Position numbers and translations under genes: made by a program | Notes under the pieces: model-generated | What the model was told of the DNA's origin: nothing | The model's database searches: none | Seen by the model: only the letters and a program-made list of their open reading frames with translations | DNA from: Octopus sinensis | Lineage: Eukaryota | DNA: 64,000 nucleotides | Direction: 5' to 3' | NCBI RefSeq assembly: GCF_006345805.1 | Contig: NC_043002.1 | Location: 24,180,001-24,244,000 of the forward strand | Shown here: positions 6,701 to 9,700 of the stretch, piece after piece | How positions within the stretch are numbered: the stretch's first letter is position 1 | Layout: every line of letters starts with the position of its first letter

Positions 6701-9700
6701 TCCTTATTACTCACTCCACCCAGATGACATCAATGTGTATCAGACTAGCACAGTCATTCGCGATAAACTAGAATAAGCACCAGTCTTTGGAAATCTCTAC
6801 TGGGAAGGTAGTTGACCCAGGAGCCTCAACATAGTCATCTAACCCACTAGGGCTAGGTAGCCATATCTTCCACATATCACACTCTACTGCTTTAAATAAG
6901 GAAAGGGGCCATTGCCAGCCTCGCCTGGACCCCGTGCCGGTGGCACGTAAAAAGCACCCACTACACTCATGGAGTGGTTGGCATTAGGAAAGGCATCCAG
7001 CCATAGAAACACTGCCAGGTCAGACTGGGCCTGGTGCAGCCTTCTGGCCTCCCAGACCCCAGTTGAACCGTCCAACCCATGCTAGCATGGAAAGCGGACG
7101 CTAAAAGATGATGATGATGTATGTTAAACAGGGCAGTCCTGCATAACGTAAAAAGTTGGGATGGTTCTGGTAGGAATGCCTTTGATTATAGGACTGTTCA
7201 ACCTCGGTTGAACTAGGGTTAAACAAAAACAAACTCTGAAGGCATCAGGGACAGTTATTTTCAAATTTATTCTCCGTGTGAAACAAAAAATATTATAATT
7301 TAGCTCTTCTTCCCAAAACTAGATCTTAAGAAGTACAGGTTATCACAACAGGTAATAAACATCTGCATTTTAATTAGCATACAGCACTAAAATTAATTAA
7401 ATGTAAATGAGATTTTAGAGTTTTTTTTTTTGAAGAGAGCAAATGACTTCAACAGAGACCGTGACAATTGATCTCATTCTGGTTTTAAAACAACAGCAAC
7501 ATGTGATAAATGCAGAGGAAGACCTTGGACACATCAGCAGAATTTGCTGGCAAACACAACCAACAAAATATCAGTGAAATCTCTTGAATAAAAGGAAATA
7601 TTTGACAATGAAGTCCTTGATAAAAGAAATGAATGATCATAGGCATGTCCTCTATGTCCCTCATTCAGCTGAGAGTTCCTAGTTTTGTGGGAGCCGGTGC
7701 CATGTTAATAGCACCCAGTACGCTCTGTAAAGTGGTTGGCATTAGGAAGGACATCCAGCTGTAGAAACCCTGCCAAAACAGACAAAATGGAGCCTGGGCA
7801 GCACTCTGGCTGGCCAGATCCTGTCAGACTGTCCAACTCATGCCGATGTGGAAAATGGATGTTAAATGATAATGATGATAGTCGAAAAACATTTGATCAT
7901 GGGTCTGACCTAGCATACCAACAACAGCAAGTGTATGGAAACAGACAGATGGTGGAGAGAGTGCATGTCTACACTGTCATATTGTATGTTAGTATGACAG
8001 TGTGGTTTTCATCTAAGTGGAGATATGGTATACCTCAGACAATTGACCTGTGGGTTGTACCTTGGTGATTGATCAATAACCTACATAGAGGCCTAGGGCC
8101 AGACAACATCAATGATAAAAAAAAAACAACAACAACAACAACGAAAACCAGGGAAATTAATGGTTTTGTTTAAAGATCTGTATTTTCAAGTTGGTCACAA
8201 CAAATTTGGGTTTTCTCCAGTTTTAGAGAAAGTTCTTCAAGCTCATCACAAATGTCACCCTGCAAACAGAACAGGAAAACAGTTTTCAAACACAAGTACA
8301 TATCACAATCACTGCAACAACGTAACCAGTGGTCACACATGCAATCTTCCTGTTCCTTCTGCCAGTCTTCAAAACTAACAGTTAGAACTGAAGGTGAGGA
8401 GTTCTGGTGCAGAGAGCATAGACACCTGGTGCTAGAGAGTATTAGAGTAGTAGATTGTTGTCTTGTTACTGAGCTTACATGAGGAGTAGATAAAAGAAAA
8501 GCTGAACCAAGGGTAGAACTAACAAGCACAGTTTCAATATATTATGTGAAGGAGGAGTTGTTTAAAAACTAAGGCAAATGAATAAGTCAAGGAGTGATGA
8601 TTAAGAAAATAATGAGGCAAGAACTGATTAATGTAGAAACCTTTAAAAGCCGTTCACAGTTGGTTAATGAAGAGAAAATATTAACAGCTAACACAATAGA
8701 AACACTAAAAACATAGTTAACATACCAAAGACTACACAATGCAGTATGAAAAGTCACAGGACAGTGAACTCATAGAATACCACAGAACATAAGACAAAAT
8801 GAACAAATTGCATTATCAAGCTCCACTGATTTCTCTGAAATGAAAGCTAACACACATAAAAAAAAAGTGTTTACTTGCACCATATGAAATGATTCTGATA
8901 TACACACAACTAGTCACAATGAAACTTCCAAACAAAACTGGAAGAAAAGTAGTGAACTAATTTAACAAACTCACTGAAAGAGGAGTCAATTCTTAACTAT
9001 TGAATATTGTGATTTAAGAAAATTATGTCTTCATTTCCCTTTTGTTTATAATTTTTTTTTTTTATACATTTTAAAATTAAATTTTTTGTTTGTTTTTTTT
9101 TCATATATAAAGGGTAAAGACCCCCTTCAGTCATGAATGACCATGGGATTACACCTAGAAAGTTATCCACCAAGGCACAAGTTGAGGCAAGGTTCTTTAT
9201 GGAAGACTAGCAGTTACTCATGCATATCAGCCGCCCTTCTCCATGCAACTCATTTCTACAGCTGAAATTTCTGCAATGTGAAATAAAATGTCTTGCTCAA
9301 GAACACAGCACAACCTGGTCCAGGGATCAAACTCACTACTTCATGCTTGTGAGCCCAACACTCTAAGCTGTGTGCCTTCAGTTTTTCCATATATGTGTGT
9401 GTGTGTGTGTGGGCAAGCACAGAGAGGGGGGGGAGAAGGAGAGAGAGAGAGAGAGAGGAAAAGAAACAAACTTTCTAGACATACTATGTTTAAGTTTGAT
9501 CTTTTGTATTAAGATTTTTACATATTTCTTTATTTGCCCTTTATGCTTACTTTGAAACAGCTTAAAATGGTAATGGACATATGAATTTATGAATAGTTGT
9601 GTTTCAAAATAACAAAAAGGGCTATACACACATGTATGTACATATATATATACATACACGCATACATGCAATATACACATTAAAAATGTAAGGGAAACTT

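Follow-up and report, generated by a model that had tools for sequence, protein, structure and literature searches.

A stretch of 64,000 nucleotides from Octopus sinensis (NCBI RefSeq assembly GCF_006345805.1, contig NC_043002.1, positions 24,180,001 to 24,244,000 of the forward strand; called the window throughout, with positions counted from its first letter) contains, on the minus strand, the greater part of a gene for RanGAP1, the GTPase-activating protein (GAP) of Ran. Intron 11 of this gene includes a segment (8259-8170, minus) that is very probably a real exon, the octopod version of an alternative last exon of ancient origin in RanGAP1. Judging from its splice acceptor, its conservation in another octopod and the likeness of its peptide to the tails of short RanGAP1 proteins in other phyla, it is probable that this old and genuine last exon yields a short RanGAP1 that lacks the anchoring domain and has a tail that is most likely a CRM1-type nuclear export signal (NES).

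The candidate terminal exon in intron 11

The gene model was rebuilt from stop-free segments, tblastn with human RanGAP1 and splice sites. Exons 1-11 encode 432 amino acids, of which residues 19-413 resemble human RanGAP1 (PDB 9b62_G, E=4e-133). Exon 12 is the only exon of the C-terminal domain inside the window, the remaining ones lying beyond its edge. The features that concern the splice choice are as follows (here and below, a slash marks a splice boundary):

13059-12985, minus: exon 11, constitutive, with the phase-0 donor CAT AAG/gtaata common to both splice choices
12984-2512, minus: intron 11, 10,473 nt, host of the putative alternative terminal exon
8260-8305, minus: acceptor region with its polypyrimidine tract and AG, conserved within a 182-nt block kept in Argonauta
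8170-8259, minus: putative alternative terminal exon, coding part, 29 codons and TAA at 8172-8170
2511-2413, minus: exon 12, first exon of the SUMO/RanBP2-binding C-terminal domain, skipped in the short isoform

The acceptor at 8259 (ctgttttcctgttctgtttgcag/GGT) opens 29 codons followed by TAA, in phase with exon 11, and joining exon 11 to it gives a predicted isoform of 461 amino acids (432 + 29). A preliminary description of this DNA, made from its letters, had given the same acceptor and phase, the same 29-residue tail and stop, the 461-residue product and an intron of about 10.5 kb, and all of these were reproduced in the rebuilt gene model. On a matrix made from the 11 real acceptors of the gene, the 8259 acceptor scores 12.8 and ranks first among the 637 AG sites of intron 11, equalling the best real acceptor of the gene under leave-one-out. 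At the level of sequence, the window has both an apparently functional acceptor and a stop within the exon, as an alternative last exon should; if only such internal evidence were counted, the case for the exon would depend on the acceptor. The exon block is single-copy and belongs to no repeat, and a repeat origin of the exon was rejected on this ground.

The preliminary description had also proposed that the short form lacks the SUMO/pore-anchoring domain. This loss follows from the isoform structure, in which exon 12 is skipped, and is confirmed by Pfam, which finds only leucine-rich repeats (LRRs; LRR_6 and LRR_1) in the 461-residue form and finds RanGAP1_C in the long form of Argonauta hians (407-580, E=1e-37). 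Residues 40-410 of the short isoform resemble Rna1p of Schizosaccharomyces pombe (E=2e-49).

In the protein collection, which does not include the species of the window, the best match to the query is the RanGAP1-like isoform X1 of A. hians (84% identical, 582 amino acids), and the A. hians locus (L001) contains an orthologue of the exon at 24234-24323, in the same intron and phase (phase 0), with 29 codons and the same stop position. A conserved exon at the orthologous intron position of a relative, conserved at the level of codons, was what the preliminary description had proposed to look for, and A. hians has it. The 29-residue peptide has one significant tblastn match in the A. hians locus (24246-24317, gene strand, E=1.3e-10, 79% identity), which sits between the equivalents of exon 11 (end at 22661, CTC AAG/gtaatt, phase 0) and exon 12 (at 28906). 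The exon there reads ttttcctattgttttatag/GTG...TTC TAA and encodes VAFEEELEEISLKLGKTNICCDKLENTDF before its stop. By MAFFT, the acceptors of the two species lie 1 nt apart and an indel of 1 nt, eleven bases downstream of the start of the exon, compensates for this, so that the downstream frame and stop are kept; an ungapped alignment is also possible, and length, phase and stop are identical in either.

When the two introns were compared by blastn, window 8305-8131 and L001 24184-24361 aligned over 182 nt (78% identity, E=1e-29), so that the alternative exon outscores exon 12 (E=1e-23) in the comparison of the two octopods. It is the only single-copy conserved block of the two introns, all remaining matches being multi-copy repeats; a second collinear block (window 12539-12470, L001 23238-23307) was dropped as a repeat, multi-copy in Argonauta. 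Synonymous sites of the LRR exons differ by about 50% between the two species (synonymous divergence, dS, about 0.8), and neutral intron sequence should therefore fail to align. Codons 6-29 of the alternative exon are 86% identical in nucleotides, with a proportion of nonsynonymous differences (pN) of 0.10, like that of the catalytic exons, and a proportion of synonymous differences (pS) of 0.27.

The 3' end is the weakest point of the short-isoform proposal. The sites in question are these:

7374-7369 and 7271-7266, minus: nearest canonical poly(A) hexamers, ATTAAA and AATAAA, 795 and 898 nt beyond the stop, not conserved
8117-8169, minus: conserved 3' flank, with a degenerate hexamer AACAAA (8170-8165) and then a GU/U-rich tract (8149-8117)

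The AATAAA at 7271-7266, to which the preliminary description had pointed, is present, but probably is not the relevant poly(A) signal: it lies 898 nt from the stop and is not conserved, and because AATAAA is expected about every 1 kb at 36% G+C, it carries no weight and was rejected. In A. hians, an AATAAA overlaps the stop codon, with a GU/U-rich tract after it; the homologous site of the window is AACAAA. The conserved 3' flank is possibly a proximal poly(A) site. The conserved 3' block contains no usable donor.

Short RanGAP1 proteins of other phyla

Among the best 120 homologues of the 461-residue query are eight RanGAP1 proteins of 423-435 amino acids without Pfam RanGAP1_C. They come from two bivalves (Mactra antiquata, 423 amino acids; Sinanodonta woodiana, 434), a sea slug (Elysia crispata, 424), an annelid (Owenia fusiformis, 435), a hemichordate (Saccoglossus kowalevskii, 428), a crinoid (Anneissia japonica, 435) and two Logan transcript assemblies. 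All eight tails, exemplified by DDLADQLDKLNLS, EDLADALDKLKL and PDLCDELGKLTLT, end in D-phi-xxx-phi-xx-phi-x-phi (phi, hydrophobic), after an acidic stretch and a DPxLxVxGxAIxPxK segment. A further protein (P0247, 420 amino acids), found in a profile search of 1.84 billion representative proteins, ends in VPLDMAHLKI.

A 13-column ungapped full-length profile was made from these eight non-cephalopod tails and scanned over the six frames of the window. The site at 8262-8224 (minus) ranked first among 60,238 stop-free positions, with a score of 25.0 against a background of -12.9 +/- 6.4; the true tails score 24.9-33.4 under leave-one-out. With hmmsearch and a 13-column hidden Markov model of the tail, the window site was only seventh by domain score, local mode being underpowered for so short a motif. 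MAFFT aligns the motif at 8224-8253 with the other tails, D434 and L444 being invariant.

The same profile identified two homologous exons and one probable one in three further loci:

Branchiostoma belcheri (L004): cag/ACG...TNETEDLTEVMGKLALS and stop; profile 24.6, the top score; orthologous intron, phase 0
Lytechinus variegatus (L008): cag/AAC...NVQDAGDLASVMDKMKL and stop; profile 27.4, the top score; orthologous intron, phase 0
Limulus polyphemus (L006, 28371-28427): tttcag/GAG...EKVIDETELIQQLGSLKF and stop; profile 16.1; orthologous 13.8-kb intron, phase 0

The Limulus candidate scores below the exons of the other taxa and is probably a chelicerate version of the short-isoform exon. In Branchiostoma and Lytechinus, the stop falls 0-1 codon past the motif, and the acceptors rank 1/177 and 4/277, respectively, on the crude matrix of the window gene. 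Saccoglossus, itself a source of the profile, has an annotated short-form terminal exon (L003, 24921-24968), with the C-terminal-domain exons 3.8 kb downstream. Exon 11 ends in phase 0 at AAG/gt in Argonauta, Saccoglossus, Branchiostoma and Limulus as well, and in phase 0 at ATG/gt in Lytechinus. In the window, Argonauta, Saccoglossus, Branchiostoma and Lytechinus, the exon lies on the gene strand in the phase-0 intron before the first C-terminal-domain exon. Homologous terminal exons are found in gastropods, bivalves, an annelid, a hemichordate, echinoderms and amphioxus.

The two Logan assemblies, L002 (SRR26439018; nearest relative Littorina, 79%) and L009 (SRR10527241), are intronless mRNAs with complete short open reading frames. 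The 484-nt 3' untranslated region of L002 contains no C-terminal-domain coding, which indicates that the exon is terminal there and not a cassette. A full-length profile of the eight short isoforms, run against the 1.84 billion representatives, returned mostly LRR proteins and long isoforms, the 50% clustering hiding isoforms. A search with the 54-residue protein of exon 11 and the alternative exon gave no candidates, and an exact 95-residue piece of the database protein P0006 was equally blank, short queries being insensitive.

The tail as a putative export signal

The tail encoded by the window comprises two overlapping NES-like motifs and an extension:

8224-8253, minus: motif A, class-1a NES spacing, the part homologous to the short-isoform tails of other phyla
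8203-8241, minus: motif B, PKI-type spacing with phi0 and Thr at phi3, found in the two octopods only
8173-8223, minus: octopod-specific 17-codon extension, past the point where other phyla stop

Motif A (phi-x3-phi-x2-phi-x-phi) has exactly one match, in the homologous register, in all 13 tails (13/13), usually with acidic neighbours. Classical class-1a NESs include those of PKI (LALKLAGLDI), MAPKK (LQKKLEELEL) and RanBP1 (VAEKLEALSV), the last belonging to a cytoplasmic Ran-cycle factor that is kept out of the nucleus by its C-terminal NES. The octopod tail has identical spacing and an acidic context, its LEELSL being nearly the LEELEL of MAPKK and the LEALSV of RanBP1, a likeness by pattern only.

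The NES register given in the preliminary description was that of motif B, four residues after the start of motif A. The PKI-type match with Thr is indeed there, and in Argonauta, where it likewise overlaps motif A, it reads LEEISLKLGKTNI, but it is octopod-specific, and the deeply conserved register is that of motif A. Motif B is still apt as an export-like motif because it has the same pattern as the N-terminal NES of human RanGAP1 (I6/L9/L13/T16/V18, with Thr at phi3), which occupies the Crm1 groove by cryo-electron microscopy and acts as an NES (PMC11703149). The likeness to the human N-terminal helix that had been noticed earlier is therefore borne out: both have phi0-x2-phi1-x3-phi2-x2-phi3-x-phi4, with Thr at phi3 and a K-T-Q-[VI] ending. 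The human signal is N-terminal, whereas motif B is a putative signal at the C-terminus of an alternative isoform, and the window protein keeps the N-terminal copy too. In exon 1 (34865-34827, minus), its N-terminus can be matched position by position to the NES at the N-terminus of the human protein, including Thr at phi3. With this homologue kept and the tail motif added, the short isoform would have export-like motifs at both ends.

AlphaFold2, run on a 9-sequence alignment, gives an LRR domain whose per-residue confidence (pLDDT) exceeds 90 from residue 40 to residue 370, an acidic linker (377-434) that is disordered and, after the linker, a single helix at 435-458 with a pLDDT of only about 57-70. 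This helix, together with the fit of the tail to NES spacing rules, is in agreement with the NES-like helix proposed earlier.

The 17-codon extension has the counterpart KLGKTNICCDKLENTDF in Argonauta. Its last part (8173-8202, minus; L001 24291-24320) reads ICCD(Q/K)LENTD(L/F)-COOH and is almost identical in both octopods. This Cys-Cys pair and T-x-hydrophobic C-terminus, similar to a class I PDZ ligand, have nothing comparable in the tails of other phyla.

In the proposed mechanism, splicing of exon 11 to exon 12 would give the long form, with the LRR GAP domain, the acidic linker and the C-terminal domain, whereas joining exon 11 to the intronic exon instead, and ending the transcript within intron 11, would give the 461-residue form, with the same GAP domain and linker. 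The latter would end in an exposed short amphipathic helix (phi-x3-phi-x2-phi-x-phi, with acidic flanks) that, by its sequence, is most likely a CRM1-type NES. The vertebrate C-terminal domain is SUMOylated and docks on RanBP2/Ubc9 at the pore. Mammalian RanGAP1 shuttles, with CRM1-dependent export and a nuclear localization signal in the C-terminal domain (PMC4624696). A short form without this localization signal and the SUMO site would be a strictly soluble, cytoplasmic RanGAP. We infer that the junction is transcribed in O. sinensis, that its transcript is ended at a site within intron 11, that the tail binds CRM1 and that the choice between the two forms is regulated.

Several observations weigh against an octopod short isoform with an export tail. 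The mature transcripts with the short form are those of L002 and L009, neither of which is a cephalopod. None of the five predicted short proteins (window, Argonauta, B. belcheri, Lytechinus and Limulus) has an exact full-length match in a collection of 15 billion proteins, which counts weakly. Both octopods read 17 codons past the point at which the other phyla stop, 0-1 residue after the motif, which makes the octopod exon a lineage variant. Over all 29 codons, which offer very few sites, the ratio of nonsynonymous to synonymous divergence (dN/dS) is 0.51, the first five codons being poorly conserved. The Argonauta acceptor ranks 36th among 339 AG sites on the crude, small matrix of the window gene.

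Of the alternatives, the one that survives best, though we consider it unlikely, is that the exon is real and makes a pore-unanchored short RanGAP1 whose tail is not an export signal but an amphipathic helix for another partner, a degron, a segment that packs onto the GAP domain or, in octopods, a PDZ-type C-terminus. The class-1a pattern occurs by chance in 22% of random 29-residue segments from the six-frame translation of the window (0.3% with the acidic context), homology already gives the protein an NES at its N-terminus, the predicted helix has a pLDDT of only about 57-70, and the 17 extra residues kept by octopods, including CC and the T-D-L/F C-terminus, are not explained by an NES. 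However, it is the four phi positions and acidic flanks that 13 species in five phyla have in common, the tail being variable elsewhere. At the end of a disordered linker the tail would be accessible, and loss of the C-terminal domain combined with gain of the motif would be a sensible way of keeping the GAP outside the nucleus.

It is much less likely that the segment acts in the RNA, as a conserved regulatory element or as a 'poison' exon whose inclusion would shorten or destabilize the mRNA and so tune the level of RanGAP1, the peptide itself being irrelevant. Synonymous sites of the exon are unusually conserved (pS 0.27, versus 0.50 in the LRR exons), which suggests constraint at the RNA level too; the coding part is flanked by conserved sequence, 46 nt upstream and about 40 nt downstream, and in the window no canonical poly(A) hexamer comes sooner than 795 nt after the stop. 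It is, however, also usual for conserved alternative coding exons to have conserved flanks and to diverge little at synonymous sites, and the peptide resembles the tails of short proteins, annotated or transcribed, in phyla too distant for nucleotide similarity to remain. The frame and stop are kept despite the apparent indel. A cassette or poison exon was rejected, because the conserved 3' block offers no usable donor and the gastropod transcript L002 ends in the homologous exon, with a non-coding 3' untranslated region and no RanGAP1 exons downstream.

A chance pseudo-exon, that is, a good AG that merely happens to precede an open frame in a long intron rich in AT, is effectively refuted: at least 29 open codons follow 19% of the AG sites of intron 11, which makes the length of the frame not significant, chance alone would place an AATAAA within 900 nt and NES-like patterns are common, but the acceptor and profile ranks (1/637 and 1/60,238), the only single-copy conserved island of the intron between two octopod families and the same exon in the same intron of other phyla are all contrary to it.

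Returning to an old last exon with an export-type tail, a broader evolutionary reading may be put forward tentatively, as one that could well prove wrong. The bilaterian ancestor may have made two RanGAPs by choice of the last exon, one anchored at the pore and kinetochore in a SUMO-dependent manner and one free in the cytoplasm with a C-terminal NES; vertebrates would have lost the latter, which would be why it escaped notice, and octopods would have added a second NES mimicking the N-terminal one and possibly a PDZ-type C-terminus (T-D-L/F). Neither the rangap1a locus of a teleost nor a locus from a bird gave a gene-strand match to the profile anywhere, and their introns at the corresponding place measure 176 nt and 475 nt, respectively.

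Known RanGAP systems and other features of the window

The short RanGAP1s of other invertebrates resemble the predicted octopod isoform in having the LRR GAP domain, the acidic linker and the D-phi-xxx-phi-xx-phi-x-phi tail and, where examined, a terminal exon in the phase-0 intron before the first C-terminal-domain exon. They differ in that their stop falls 0-1 residue past the motif, whereas the 17 additional codons of octopods create the second, PKI-type match. Fungal Rna1p (S. pombe, PDB 1k5d and 1yrg) likewise has only the LRR domain and an acidic tail, without a SUMO-attachment domain, but it is the sole form in fungi, whereas the domain-less octopod form would be one of two alternative products, the anchor domain being encoded by the same gene.

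Segregation distorter (Sd) of Drosophila is a C-terminally truncated RanGAP in which the GAP domain is kept, as Merrill et al. in 1999 and Kusano et al. in 2001 are said to have reported. Sd-RanGAP is the product of a mutant duplicate gene, has lost an export signal and is nuclear, whereas the octopod isoform is a predicted splice product that gains an export-like signal; the opposite localization is therefore predicted. The octopod case is not a truncated duplicate without an export signal of the Sd type: there is a single gene, the product would arise by splicing, and the tail adds a motif.

No description of a RanGAP1 short isoform without the C-terminal domain was found in open-access papers and bioRxiv; one candidate (PMC12946277) was rejected because it concerns isoforms of TBC1D23. 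The short RanGAP1s of other invertebrates are annotated (automatically) or assembled, but none of the papers found discusses them.

The localization of RanGAP1 sets the steepness of the RanGTP gradient, which drives nuclear transport, spindle assembly and reformation of the nuclear envelope. In current models, vertebrates partition a single protein by SUMOylation, fungi have no anchoring domain and plants use a WPP domain. If the interpretation is correct, most invertebrate lineages would have a fourth solution, and maybe the ancestral one of animals: a conserved choice, made by splicing, between an anchored RanGAP and a free one with an export tag. It would also provide an isoform-specific genetic handle on the pore-anchored and soluble roles of RanGAP in sea urchin, amphioxus and molluscs, and a context for Sd, a harmful truncated RanGAP in the wrong compartment. 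For annotation, it would mean that short RanGAP1 models without the C-terminal domain are not to be taken for truncated predictions.

The exons of RanGAP1 upstream of the splice choice are:

34925-34763, minus: exon 1
31589-31462, minus: exon 2
26224-26165, minus: exon 3
24965-24786, minus: exon 4
23317-23183, minus: exon 5
23095-22937, minus: exon 6
21208-21095, minus: exon 7
18748-18649, minus: exon 8
16549-16465, minus: exon 9
14307-14211, minus: exon 10, encoding the acidic stretch after the LRR domain

Apart from the alternative exon, intron 11 consists of repeats and a mariner remnant. The latter (4861-5333, minus) is a decayed mariner/Mos1-type transposon with Pfam matches to HTH_48 (E=0.002) and Transposase_1 (partial DDE, E=2e-5) in adjacent broken frames. 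A repeat resembling a short interspersed nuclear element is present in many copies on both strands (6887-7185, 7708-7896, 11141-11287, 20419-20850, 25253-25609, 28076-28258, 41141-41683 and others), and its relatives in the Argonauta intron account for all of the non-exon blastn matches between the two introns. Intron 9 contains an open frame (15819-16016, minus) without a Pfam match, which we take to resemble the C-terminal end of ORF2 of a non-LTR (long terminal repeat) retrotransposon.

The upstream neighbour of RanGAP1 on the same strand is Pecanex-like (48159-48359, minus; Pecanex_C, E=6e-8), and two open reading frames (51917-53002 and 54321-54866, minus) without Pfam matches probably belong to the same gene. 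Intron 1 of RanGAP1 contains, at approximately 33880-34520, a long imperfect (TA/CA)-type microsatellite that is open in several frames, followed by a GA repeat (RERERE).

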